From Adineta vaga (lineage: Eukaryota > Animalia > Rotifera), in NCBI GenBank assembly GCA_021613535.1, contig CP075492.1, forward strand, positions 4,588,001 to 4,652,000: a DNA stretch of 64,000 nucleotides, read 5' to 3'. The translations under genes and the position numbers were made by a program. This document shows, piece by piece, positions 51,595 to 54,727 of this stretch. Within the stretch, counting starts at the first letter, position 1. Each line of letters starts with the position of its first letter. A model generated the notes under the pieces. It saw only the letters and a list, made by a program, of their open reading frames with translations, made no database searches and was not told where the DNA came from.

Positions 51595-52348
51595 GAATGT
51601 TTAGAAACAGTACTTGATTTTACTTTTGTCTTGCAATAAATGATTTAATGATACTTTGAAATGGTGAAAGGATGAGAAACACTTTTAAAAAGCTTTTATG
51701 TATAAAGTCTGCTTGGACCGGAATCTGGTCAAGTTCAGGTCGAGCTTGAAAGCTTTGCTGAGCACTCTTATCATTCTATCAGAAAAGGGTCAGCGAATCC
51801 AGAGGATGAGCGTTACTTGTAGATATTAGCAAAGGAATAATCATCATTGATGGTTTTCTAGAAGAACACTTATTCTTCGATATTTGAGAAGAAACTCGGT
51901 GAGAAGAACGACTAGCTGGTGTAGAAAATCTATATCGTTTCTTCATTAAGTTTAGATGTTATCAAGTAAAACGAAAGAATAATCTTGTCACTCGACAACT
52001 AAATTAAGATTGATTATCAAGCAATTTTTCCCCGGATACTTAATAGTATCAATCGTGCTCTCTTTGTGTATGACACAACATGAATCACTTGTATTACTAC
52101 TATTCATCGGACAAAAACGCATTGCTCTCTTGTTATTCCATTCATCGTCATTTTCCTTGAAGTACTCCACATAGATCATCAAGATACACATTATTTTAAG
52201 CAAAATTCAATGATATTGAATATCTTATGTCAAATAAAATAAAATAAACTGAAACTTAATCTAAACATCAAGCGAGTAATCCACAACAGAAATCATTGTA
52301 TGTGTTTCTTTATGTATTTTTTTGATAAAAACCAAGTACGATCACATA

Positions 52349-54615
52349 TCAATATTCACTGTCAATAAACTTGGCAATTGTATTGAGTTGTATGTTACTA
52401 GTTCCTTCGTAGATAGTTCCTAAAATATATCAAACGTAAAAATTGAAATATTTCTATTTTCTAATAACAAACTATACTCACCAACTTTACAATCACGAAA
52501 GAACTTTTCTTGTGGATATTCACATGAAAATCCAAGGCCACCCATGAAATCAATACTGAAATTAGACACAGCATAACATGAACTATTCACTTACGAACAT
52601 AATTTCGAGGGAAAAAAATTACATACCATTTACTGGTCACTCTTCCAGCTAACTAGAAAAAGAAACAAACATGTAAAAATAGTAATACTTAAGAATAAAT
52701 AAGAATTCTGTACTTCTGATGAGTAGAATTTAGCCATCGCTGCTTGTTTTACAAATGGTAATTTTGCATCACGTAAACGTGCAGCATTATATGTTAAAAG
52801 TCGTGCCGCTTCGATTTCTGTTGCTAATGATGCTATTTGGTGTTGCATACCCTAGATTATATTCATTTAAAAATCATCAAGAATTCTCATATCAATTTCA
52901 CATACTTGAAAATCAAAGATTCGTTGACCAAATTGTTTACGTTCTTTTGTATATGGTATTGTTTTATCAAATGCACCTTGACTAACACCTATCATCTATG
53001 TAGAATACTAAATTTCGAAACGAGAATCTGAATCAAACGAATTTACTTGAGCAGCAATACCAACACGACCTTCATTAAGCATTGATATAGCATATTTATA
53101 ACCTTGACCTTCTTTACCAAGAAGATTCTTTGCCGGAATCTAAGAATAAATGATAAAAAATTTGCAAGATTGAAGAAAAAACCACTCAATTATCCAACTC
53201 ATGACATACTTTACAATCATCGAAATGAACCATACATGTTGATGATGCTTTCAAACCCATTTTTTTCTCGCGTTTTCCAATACGTAAACCTTCAGTTTCA
53301 CGATCAACAATAAATGTTGAAATTCCTTTGTGTTTCTAGAAATAAATAAAAACGAAATAGTCTTTCAAATAGATCCTAAGTTTCTATTTACAGCTTGTGG
53401 ATTTGAATTTGCCATAACAAGATAAACTCCACTAATTTCAGCATTTGAAATCCACATTTTTGTACCATTTAATACATAATAATCTCCTCGTTTCTCTGCT
53501 GTTGTTTTCAAAGCAAATGCATCACTACCAGACGTTGGTTCTGTCAAACAAAAACTGGCAACCTAAAAGGAAAAAGATCATCGATTAAATTTTTCATTCT
53601 CATTCAAAACAAAAGAAATATCAAAAGAACAACACGAGATTTTTAGCCAATTGTGGTAGATAATGTTGTTTTTGTTCTTCTGTTCCATAATTAAGAAATA
53701 ATCGATTAAATAAAGTATTTTGTAGATCCAACAATAATCCAACACTTGGATCAATCTTTGACATTTCTTCAATAACAAGAATTGAGGAAAAAAATGTTTG
53801 ACCTGAACCACCATATTCCAAAGGAACATCAACGGACATCAACTAGAAAGGAAAAAGGAAACTTGATGAATAATAATCATTACCATATCTTTCGCTAATC
53901 GAGGCAAATACGTAGCTTTTTGATCATCATTAGCAAGTTGAATGAAAAAAGGATTCACAACAGTATTTTGTACATCCAAAAAACCTTAACAAATCATTCG
54001 TAAGACTAAAAAGAAATATTTTTCTTTGTTTTCTACCTCCGAAAGCACTATCTAAATGCAAAGAAAATCTATCGTAACAAATCTATTCGAGTTTAATTCT
54101 AATATTTTCTAACCTATTTTCGATGCTTCCTCAATTGCCAATATACAAGCGAAAAGATTCGAACCACCTCCTCCATACTGTGTAGGTATTTCAATACCCA
54201 TCCACTATTTTCAAACGTATACAAATCACACAATATCATATAAACACATTGATTACTCACGCCCTGATCGAATATCGCTTTCATCAATTCAGGTCTAAAA
54301 CTACCGGCTTCTTCCATTTCACGAATATACGGTTCAACATGTTCTTTACCAAAACGACTAACTAGATTCAAATAAATTAGTTCATGAAGTATGAAAATTG
54401 AGAAAATAAATCAAACCTGTGTCTTTAATCATTTGTTCTTCTTCAGAAAAATTATACAATGATTGATTGACTGGAGTCGATGAAAGATTTCGTGTTCGAA
54501 AGATCCATGATTTAGATCTGATAAGAATAGAATTTATCTCATTCAATTTGATCGAAAAATCTTACTGAATTGTTCGAAATAATTGAGTTGTTGTTACAAA
54601 TCGACTAAAATTCAT
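52349..54615 (-). CDS. ACADSB: Short/branched-chain acyl-CoA dehydrogenase, mitochondrial, multi-exon, with duplicated internal exon module
   Basis: [80 protein letters not shown] (catalytic Glu in YEG). Confidence 0.92.
53636..53842 (-). other. ACADSB alternative module B (single 207-nt exon)
   Basis: TAG|[37 protein letters not shown]|GT, phase 0/0. Confidence 0.85.
53884..54204 (-). other. ACADSB alternative module A (exons 54204-54114, 54051-54037, 53984-53884; 207 nt in total)
   Basis: [43 protein letters not shown], phase 0/0, all GT-AG. Confidence 0.85.
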
Positions 54616-54727
54616 TATGGTCTGAAACAGAGATGTTTTTTTACATTTAATTTCATATCTGACGTTTATAGGAAAAAAACAATAAAACAACAAAATAGAA
54701 AATAACAAACAAAAATACATTAACAGT

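Follow-up and report, generated by a model that had tools for sequence, protein, structure and literature searches.

How can one gene for an acyl-CoA dehydrogenase (ACAD) provide two versions of the helix that forms the floor of the acyl pocket, and what keeps the two versions from entering the same protein? These questions are raised by a locus of the rotifer Adineta vaga that lies in the window, i. e. the complete stretch of 64,000 nucleotides analysed here (contig CP075492.1, positions 4,588,001 to 4,652,000). An earlier note on this DNA had proposed that two homologous exon modules, here called A and B, replace each other between the same two exons, that an intervening intron too short for splicing keeps them apart, and that the gene yields two dehydrogenases of different chain specificity. 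Our analysis makes it very probable that one ACADSB gene uses mutually exclusive homologous modules and probably encodes two dehydrogenases; in addition, we infer a steric block between the modules and a difference in the substrates of the two forms.

As judged from its sequence, the minus-strand gene is the orthologue of ACADSB, with a predicted activity towards (S)-2-methylbutyryl-CoA. The Pfam domains Acyl-CoA_dh_N, Acyl-CoA_dh_M and Acyl-CoA_dh_1 (N-terminal helical, middle beta and C-terminal helical) were matched exon by exon and in the same order as in human ACADSB. The catalytic glutamate can be read directly in the last exon, in an ..IYEGT.. motif (YEGT-type) near the C-terminus, and the position of this motif is again that of the human enzyme. 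Among solved structures, that of human ACADSB (PDB 2jif) ranked first for module B (residues 74-139, 2e-18), for the exon downstream of the modules (residues 143-197, 2e-20) and for a C-terminal exon (residues 303-348, 2e-15), and for all three exons compared it was better than the next ACAD subfamily by 6-8 orders of magnitude. The gene has 13 constitutive introns, every intron being present as a CT..AC joint (plus strand) in RNA contigs, and moreover the spacer between the modules. In the 100.8 Mb of the six-piece genome, no second (ohnologous) copy of the gene was found, only ACAD paralogues with 30-52% identity. Separate ACAD8-, IVD-, MCAD-, GCDH- and VLCAD-like loci are present elsewhere in the genome; a canonical SCAD orthologue was not seen in the rotifer ACAD set. 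Two ideas on the modules were discarded: Module A does not stand in for a missing ACAD8/IBD, as an ACAD8 orthologue is present in the genome, and module B was not imported from an ACAD paralogue, the best of which is 35-36% identical as compared to ~48% between A and B.

The two modules lie one behind the other between the same constitutive exons (see the table). Each of them comprises 207 nt (69 codons), begins and ends in phase 0 and is free of stop codons; coordinates, translations and phases all hold for the two collinear paralogous segments described in the earlier note. Likewise, the assembly of module A from three exons including the micro-exon, and of module B from a single exon, is borne out by the sequence and by the RNA contigs, and the gap between the A donor and the B acceptor was confirmed to the base. 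A and B share 30 of 63 amino acids over the parts compared. Both match the same positions of the Pfam domain Acyl-CoA_dh_N (45-111) and the same residues of 2jif (74-142); a single protein can accommodate just one of the two. The arrangement is far beyond chance: layout, micro-exon and splice sites recur in 14 independent lineages.

Table. Features of the ACADSB orthologue and of its two alternative modules (positions in the window; X1, X5 and X6 are RNA runs)
Feature	Position	Strand	Remarks
ACADSB orthologue, coding span	52349..54615	minus	ATG 54615-54613, stop 52351-52349; sequence reading
Upstream constitutive exon	54261..54361	minus	ends ..IFDQG, phase 0; RNA joint to 54204 or 53842
Module A, exon A1, 91 nt	54114..54204	minus	residues 1-30 + 1 nt; joint 54261>54204 in X1, X5, X6
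Module A, micro-exon, 15 nt	54037..54051	minus	completes codons 31-36 (D S A F G G); RNA in X1, X5, X6
Module A, exon A3, 101 nt	53884..53984	minus	residues 36-69; joint 53884>53562 in X1, X5, X6
Spacer between A3 donor and B acceptor, 41 nt	53843..53883	minus	GTAAT..CTAG; retention leads to an in-frame stop
Module B, single exon of 207 nt, canonical ACADSB type	53636..53842	minus	joints 54261>53842 and 53636>53562 in X1, X5
Downstream constitutive exon	53392..53562	minus	starts VASFCLTEP; RNA joint to A3 or B

Both modules are used in RNA. We compared the region from 52250 to 54700 with assembled Logan contigs of four runs, in which roughly one half of the sampled words occur; since splicing is seen in them at all introns of the gene, these contigs are derived from RNA. 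The A path, leading from the upstream exon via A1, the micro-exon and A3 to the downstream exon, was found in X1, X5 and X6, i. e. in three studies, and the B path, with B as the only exon between the constitutive exons, in X1 and X5. In X1, X5 and X6, the micro-exon appears as 13 letters between the sides of the joint 53986>54114 that are equal to the micro-exon, and the joint 53884>53562 corresponds to 53560>53882 as aligned, with the cut shifted by +2. In X5, the two paths form two bubble contigs of 266 nt each, which corresponds to 207 nt plus the k-mer flanks and is expected for arms of equal length. The contig depths for A and B, a poor measure of the level, were 35 vs 37 in X1, 8 vs 23 in X5, and 6 vs none in X6; the ratio of A to B may therefore vary between the runs. 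Of the five junctions that the earlier note had named, the four that join either module to the constitutive exons (54261>54204, 54261>53842, 53884>53562 and 53636>53562) are present, and the joint for double inclusion (A3 to B, 53884>53842) was not seen in the RNA contigs, which show presence rather than absence. The same scope applies to the skipping of both modules (54261>53562), which was not seen either, and no spliced form of the 41-nt spacer was seen in the RNA contigs; transcripts with both modules or with neither may exist as rare forms. Unspliced contigs of low depth run across the spacer and also across the next intron, and look like ordinary pre-mRNA or DNA background. Thus, with each path occurring alone and the A3-B joint absent from the RNA contigs, the mutually exclusive use of the modules is supported. 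The animal is diploid, and its alleles can be told apart in the RNA contigs.

When public metagenomes and Logan assemblies were searched by words of module B, 33 homologous ORF fragments with 74-96% identity were identified. From the contigs of these matches and from a pattern scan of JGI metagenomes (A3 alignment), 14 distinct lineages, the window included, and a number of near-duplicates were obtained. Wherever the contig reaches, the layout is identical in the 14 lineages: upstream exon, A1, micro-exon, A3, a short GT..AG spacer, B, and downstream exon. Contigs of 12 lineages span the micro-exon (those of L030 and L041 begin inside A3), and in all 12 it is flanked by AG and GT, encodes D-S-A-F-G-G, and carries only synonymous changes. 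The mean pairwise dN/dS is ~0.18 for module A and ~0.20 for module B as compared to 0.09 for the flanking exons (at dS values of 0.5-0.9, saturated against the most distant lineage). Both modules are under purifying selection. In the module trees, the A sequences form one clade (100/98) and the B sequences another (100/99), and the duplication is therefore older than all 14 lineages. In agreement with the long retention that the earlier note had deduced from their divergence, both modules are intact in 14 lineages, and neither of them evolves neutrally. Conservation and purifying selection exclude that either module is a decaying relic. A predicted 18-bp helix between A1 and A3, the only long one, was considered as a competing or bridging RNA structure and rejected: it is exonic, shows no compensatory changes and does not exceed synonymous-codon shuffles in stability (z mostly 0 to -1.8).

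What does the exchange of the modules change in the protein? A and B have disjoint sets of residues at 23 of the 69 positions, which we call class-specific. Module B can be aligned without gaps to human IVD, in which position 36 of the module corresponds to L95 (L127 in precursor numbering). [quoted passage not shown] Thus, the segment does contain residues of helix E/alpha4 that line the pocket, in line with the earlier note. B has Leu at each of positions 36, 40 and 44, where A carries Gly (36), Val or Leu (40) and Val (44); moreover, A contains an invariant Pro47. A large representative search with module B returned mostly fragmentary ACADs that are 43-62% identical and no full-length rotifer protein, and its 150 best homologues served for comparison. 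Of these 150 proteins, 127 have Val and one has Gly at position 36, and at position 44 there are 138 with Leu and five with Val; at the class-specific positions, likeness to B is about two times as frequent as likeness to A. Based on these residue frequencies and on the B-likeness at the class-specific positions, B appears to be the canonical version and A a derived one, in which the residues that face the pocket are smaller. Mapped by the ungapped alignment, the residues of module A should deepen or widen the acyl pocket, and we infer that the A form takes longer or bulkier acyl groups.

One of the lineages (L022) provides a natural experiment in this respect, as the whole gene is tandemly duplicated. 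Copy 1 has retained both modules. In copy 2, module A has been destroyed by three deletions, with loss of splice sites, and by a stop codon; module B and all other mappable exons remain open. Between the two copies, module B differs by 11.5 non-synonymous and 2.5 synonymous changes (pN/pS 1.31), as compared to pN/pS values of 0.11-0.14 for the neighbouring exons, and module B of copy 2 carries Ser36, Gly40 and Ala43. Hence, the change after the duplication is concentrated in module B, and at pocket positions. This pattern fits a role of the module as the part of the enzyme that determines the specificity.

Two contigs from more distant organisms bear on the age of the pair. L034, a contig of 942 nt from a much more divergent organism, was reached via one match of the representative search, and its relative L040 came from the JGI scan. 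Both contain an A-like module with Gly35-Gly36 and Val44-Val45, which is sister to the bdelloid A clade (98/80, based on only 69 columns). In L034, this module is a single exon; a further module begins 449 nt downstream, and the contig stops after its 14th base. The A-like module of L040 has exactly 69 codons and introns at positions not used in bdelloids, and a complete module of the canonical type follows 718 nt downstream of it; there is no short spacer. These two short contigs suggest that the A/B pair arose before the 14 lineages separated and that introns may have entered the A-type module repeatedly. With the modules 718 nt apart in L040, the short spacer is not universal.

If the two modules exclude each other, by which mechanism is this achieved? 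An intervening intron that is too short, so that too little distance is left between the donor and the branch site and acceptor that follow, is a classical device for mutual exclusion. In the rotifer gene, the spacer is 27-43 nt long in all 14 lineages, and in seven of them only 27-33 nt; the 61 other introns of the same gene region have 44-113 nt, without any overlap (Mann-Whitney p = 3e-9, shared ancestry ignored). The sequence of the spacer diverges freely, yet it always starts with GTAA and ends with YAG, and reading through it results in a stop codon or a frameshift in 14 of 14 lineages. The statement of the earlier note that the spacer is shorter than the shortest other introns is therefore correct, whereas the minimum of 46-47 nt given there is not: the shortest RNA-supported intron of the gene has 48 nt. 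The double inclusion of A and B would stay in frame, and nonsense-mediated decay could thus not remove such a transcript. We consider a steric block of A3-B splicing by the short spacer the most likely mechanism, with moderate confidence. According to this model, each mature mRNA would carry either A with its three exons or B with its single exon between the same constitutive exons, and the distance of 27-43 nt between the A3 donor and the B acceptor would be too small for joining them, so that double inclusion would not occur; retention of the spacer would end in a stop or a frameshift. Either module supplies the last part of the N-terminal helical domain with helix E/alpha4, the side chains of which make up the floor of the acyl pocket: the B form would be a standard enzyme of the 2-methylbutyryl-CoA type, and the A form a dehydrogenase for longer or bulkier acyl groups.

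The exclusivity might be real and yet have a cause other than the spacer, such as competition between splice sites, regulators that act on the exons of module A, or the decay of aberrant forms, and the spacer would then be a by-product of the tandem duplication in a genome whose introns are tiny. This is in our view a rather unlikely alternative. The margin is narrow: the longest spacer has 43 nt and the shortest other intron, a predicted functional one, 44 nt, with the RNA-supported minimum of 48 nt in the gene of the window. Most annotated introns of bdelloids have 30-100 bp, with medians of 55-58 (Nowell et al. 2018). Given the narrow margin and these annotations, spacers of 38-43 nt may not be strictly unspliceable. 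Moreover, module A is conserved at synonymous sites, with 23 of 44 codons being identical as compared to 6 of 40 in B and 19 of 95 in the constitutive exons (23/44 vs the pooled 25/135, p = 3e-5; invariant degenerate residues only, seven lineages), and this points to signals at the RNA level. The acceptor of A3 (TTAAG) has no pyrimidine tract, and the donor of B is a conserved non-consensus GTGTTG. It is plausible that splicing signals are the cause of the synonymous conservation, as the joint selection of three small exons is required and their sites are weak. The modules of L040, which are 718 nt apart, fit such a non-spacer cause as well. On the other hand, the sequence of the spacer drifts while its length stays below that of every other intron in 14 of 14 lineages, seven of them with 27-33 nt. 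Decay, for its part, could not eliminate an A+B transcript that is in frame, and no conserved competing or docking RNA helix was found in seven lineages with RNAalifold (covariation term of ~0). The steric block remains the preferred mechanism.

The two other alternatives concern the modules themselves. The isoforms could differ in their stability, in the interaction with FAD or ETF, in tetramer assembly or in regulation rather than in acyl-chain specificity, and indeed many of the 23 class-specific positions are located outside the three pocket positions. We regard this as improbable: the changes include the very residue that determines the depth of the pocket, at which Gly occurs in one of the 150 homologues, and after the duplication in L022 rapid evolution was confined to the module and affected these same positions of the pocket. 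The idea that one module is unused or decaying, or that A and B transcripts originate from different haplotypes, is largely refuted, and we give it hardly any weight. It could invoke the run X6 with only the A form, the tandem paralogue of another lineage that has lost module A, and the diploidy of the animal with its allelic differences in the RNA contigs. All this is outweighed by the findings that X1 and X5 contain spliced A and B forms at similar depth, and that the modules are located in cis, both in this assembly and on each of 14 independent contigs, where they are intact and have dN/dS values well below 1. Thus, mutually exclusive modules that probably confer different substrate specificities remain the reading that we favour.

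Several elements of this arrangement have precedents. In alpha-tropomyosin, exons 2 and 3 exclude each other because the intron between them is too short. The rotifer modules resemble this pair in that adjacent homologous alternatives of equal length and phase share the same flanking exons, with the donor of one close to the acceptor and branch site of the next. They differ from it as one of the alternatives consists of three exons, including a micro-exon of 15 nt, that have to be chosen together, and as normal rotifer introns have ~45-70 nt, so that the margin is a few bases; the likeness concerns the layout, and a common mechanism would be likely. Mutually exclusive exons are also known for PKM (exons 9 and 10) and SLC25A3 (exons 3A and 3B). 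For the mitochondrial enzyme OGDH, exons 4a and 4b are used in this manner (PMC7969005). As in these three genes, tandem duplication of exons results in one gene with two variants of, in the rotifer presumably, differing properties; the protein family is another one, and in the rotifer gene the exchange would affect the helix on which the depth of the acyl pocket depends.

Differences of the same kind distinguish members of the ACAD family. The depth of the pocket differs between IVD with L127/L290 and MCAD with T121/V284 (PMC12369846), and in LCAD helix E is unwound at Pro132 with small neighbours, which results in a larger cavity (PMC11153573). Similar to LCAD, module A has a proline inside the helix, which is immediately preceded by Gly-Gly, and a comparable structural effect may be expected. 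In IVD, MCAD and LCAD, such differences reside in separate paralogous genes, whereas in the rotifer they are present as alternative exons of one gene. To our knowledge, human ACADSB has this segment in one version, and our literature search did not reveal any alternative; the rotifer gene is unlike its human counterpart in having a second, derived segment with Gly36, Val44 and Pro47. Similarly, full-text literature searches identified no description of a mutually exclusive exon in an acyl-CoA dehydrogenase or in rotifers. Tandemly duplicated exclusive exons, steric blocking by short introns, and isoform switches of metabolic enzymes are all already known. What is unusual here is that a unit of three exons with a micro-exon is opposed to a single exon, and that a pocket-depth helix is swapped.

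In the ACAD family, the substrate ranges are normally split among paralogous genes, and here one gene swaps the helix that sets the pocket depth. The gene thus offers a natural helix swap in ACADSB that has been tested by evolution: the isoforms share their whole scaffold except for a segment of 69 residues, and orthologous A/B pairs from many lineages are open to comparison. It also raises two questions for the field of splicing, namely how a block of three exons with a 15-nt micro-exon is selected in competition with one exon, and how near a spliceosome that handles introns of ~50 nt works to the lower limit of intron length. It is tempting to speculate, and we do so with due reserve, that the A/B pair is an ancient, possibly pre-bdelloid switch of specificity, in which the derived module has been maintained for a long time and the A isoform is a distinct enzyme with a deeper pocket. 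If this were the case, the A isoform might fill a gap in the ACAD set of the rotifers, in which no canonical SCAD orthologue was seen, and gene duplication could resolve the switch into separate genes, as in L022.

In one related lineage, ACADSB is present as a tandem duplicate (contigs in the table). In copy 2, module A has been destroyed by three deletions and one stop codon; module B is retained and its amino acid sequence changes rapidly (pN/pS 1.31), with the changes falling at the pocket positions 36, 40 and 43. In the lineages compared (the module A exons, window 53884-54204, against the loci L018-L031), the synonymous sites of exons A1 and A3 are unusually conserved, even in one GC-rich lineage. 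A predicted helix between A1 and A3 was considered as the cause, and it does not account for this conservation.

Two contigs from a distant organism also carry an A-like module with one of canonical type after it. No intron splits the A-like module in L034, whereas in L040 it is split by introns at positions other than those of the bdelloid module A. The two modules lie 449-718 nt apart, and the short spacer is absent there.

Acyl-CoA dehydrogenase loci detected

Feature	Location	Remark
A-like, then canonical-type module	L034:1-942 (Logan SRR33369600)	distant organism
A-like, then canonical-type module	L040:1-1541 (JGI Ga0214179_1012506)	distant organism
ACADSB copy 1 of the duplicated lineage	L024, L025, L033	
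ACADSB copy 2	L022:2593-3212; L032 (JGI contig Ga0556823_001137)	
Bacterial-like gene	G000:C6:9282501 (L004)	intron-poor, long open frame
Bacterial-like gene	G000:C2:16154898 (L005)	intron-poor, long open frame

Among the acyl-CoA dehydrogenase loci found in the A. vaga genome (G000) there is no canonical animal SCAD orthologue. The best solved-structure matches of L004 and L005 are of the bacterial butyryl-CoA dehydrogenase and FadE3 types, and the two genes are thus candidates for horizontal acquisition. The pattern scan also picked up uninterrupted, presumably bacterial acyl-CoA dehydrogenase genes on four large metagenome contigs (L035, L036, L037 and L047); these share the QNTVVN motif with module A, carry Val or Leu at position 36, and are unrelated to the exon switch.

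At the gene itself, the RNA contigs of run X1 contain two variants, C>A at window position 54478 and an altered base at 54516, where exon 2 begins; each has about half the depth, consistent with two expressed alleles. Finally, a gene encoding a calponin-homology domain adjoins ACADSB immediately downstream on the opposite strand in L020, L026, L027, L029 and L030, and its recurrence in several lineages indicates conserved synteny.
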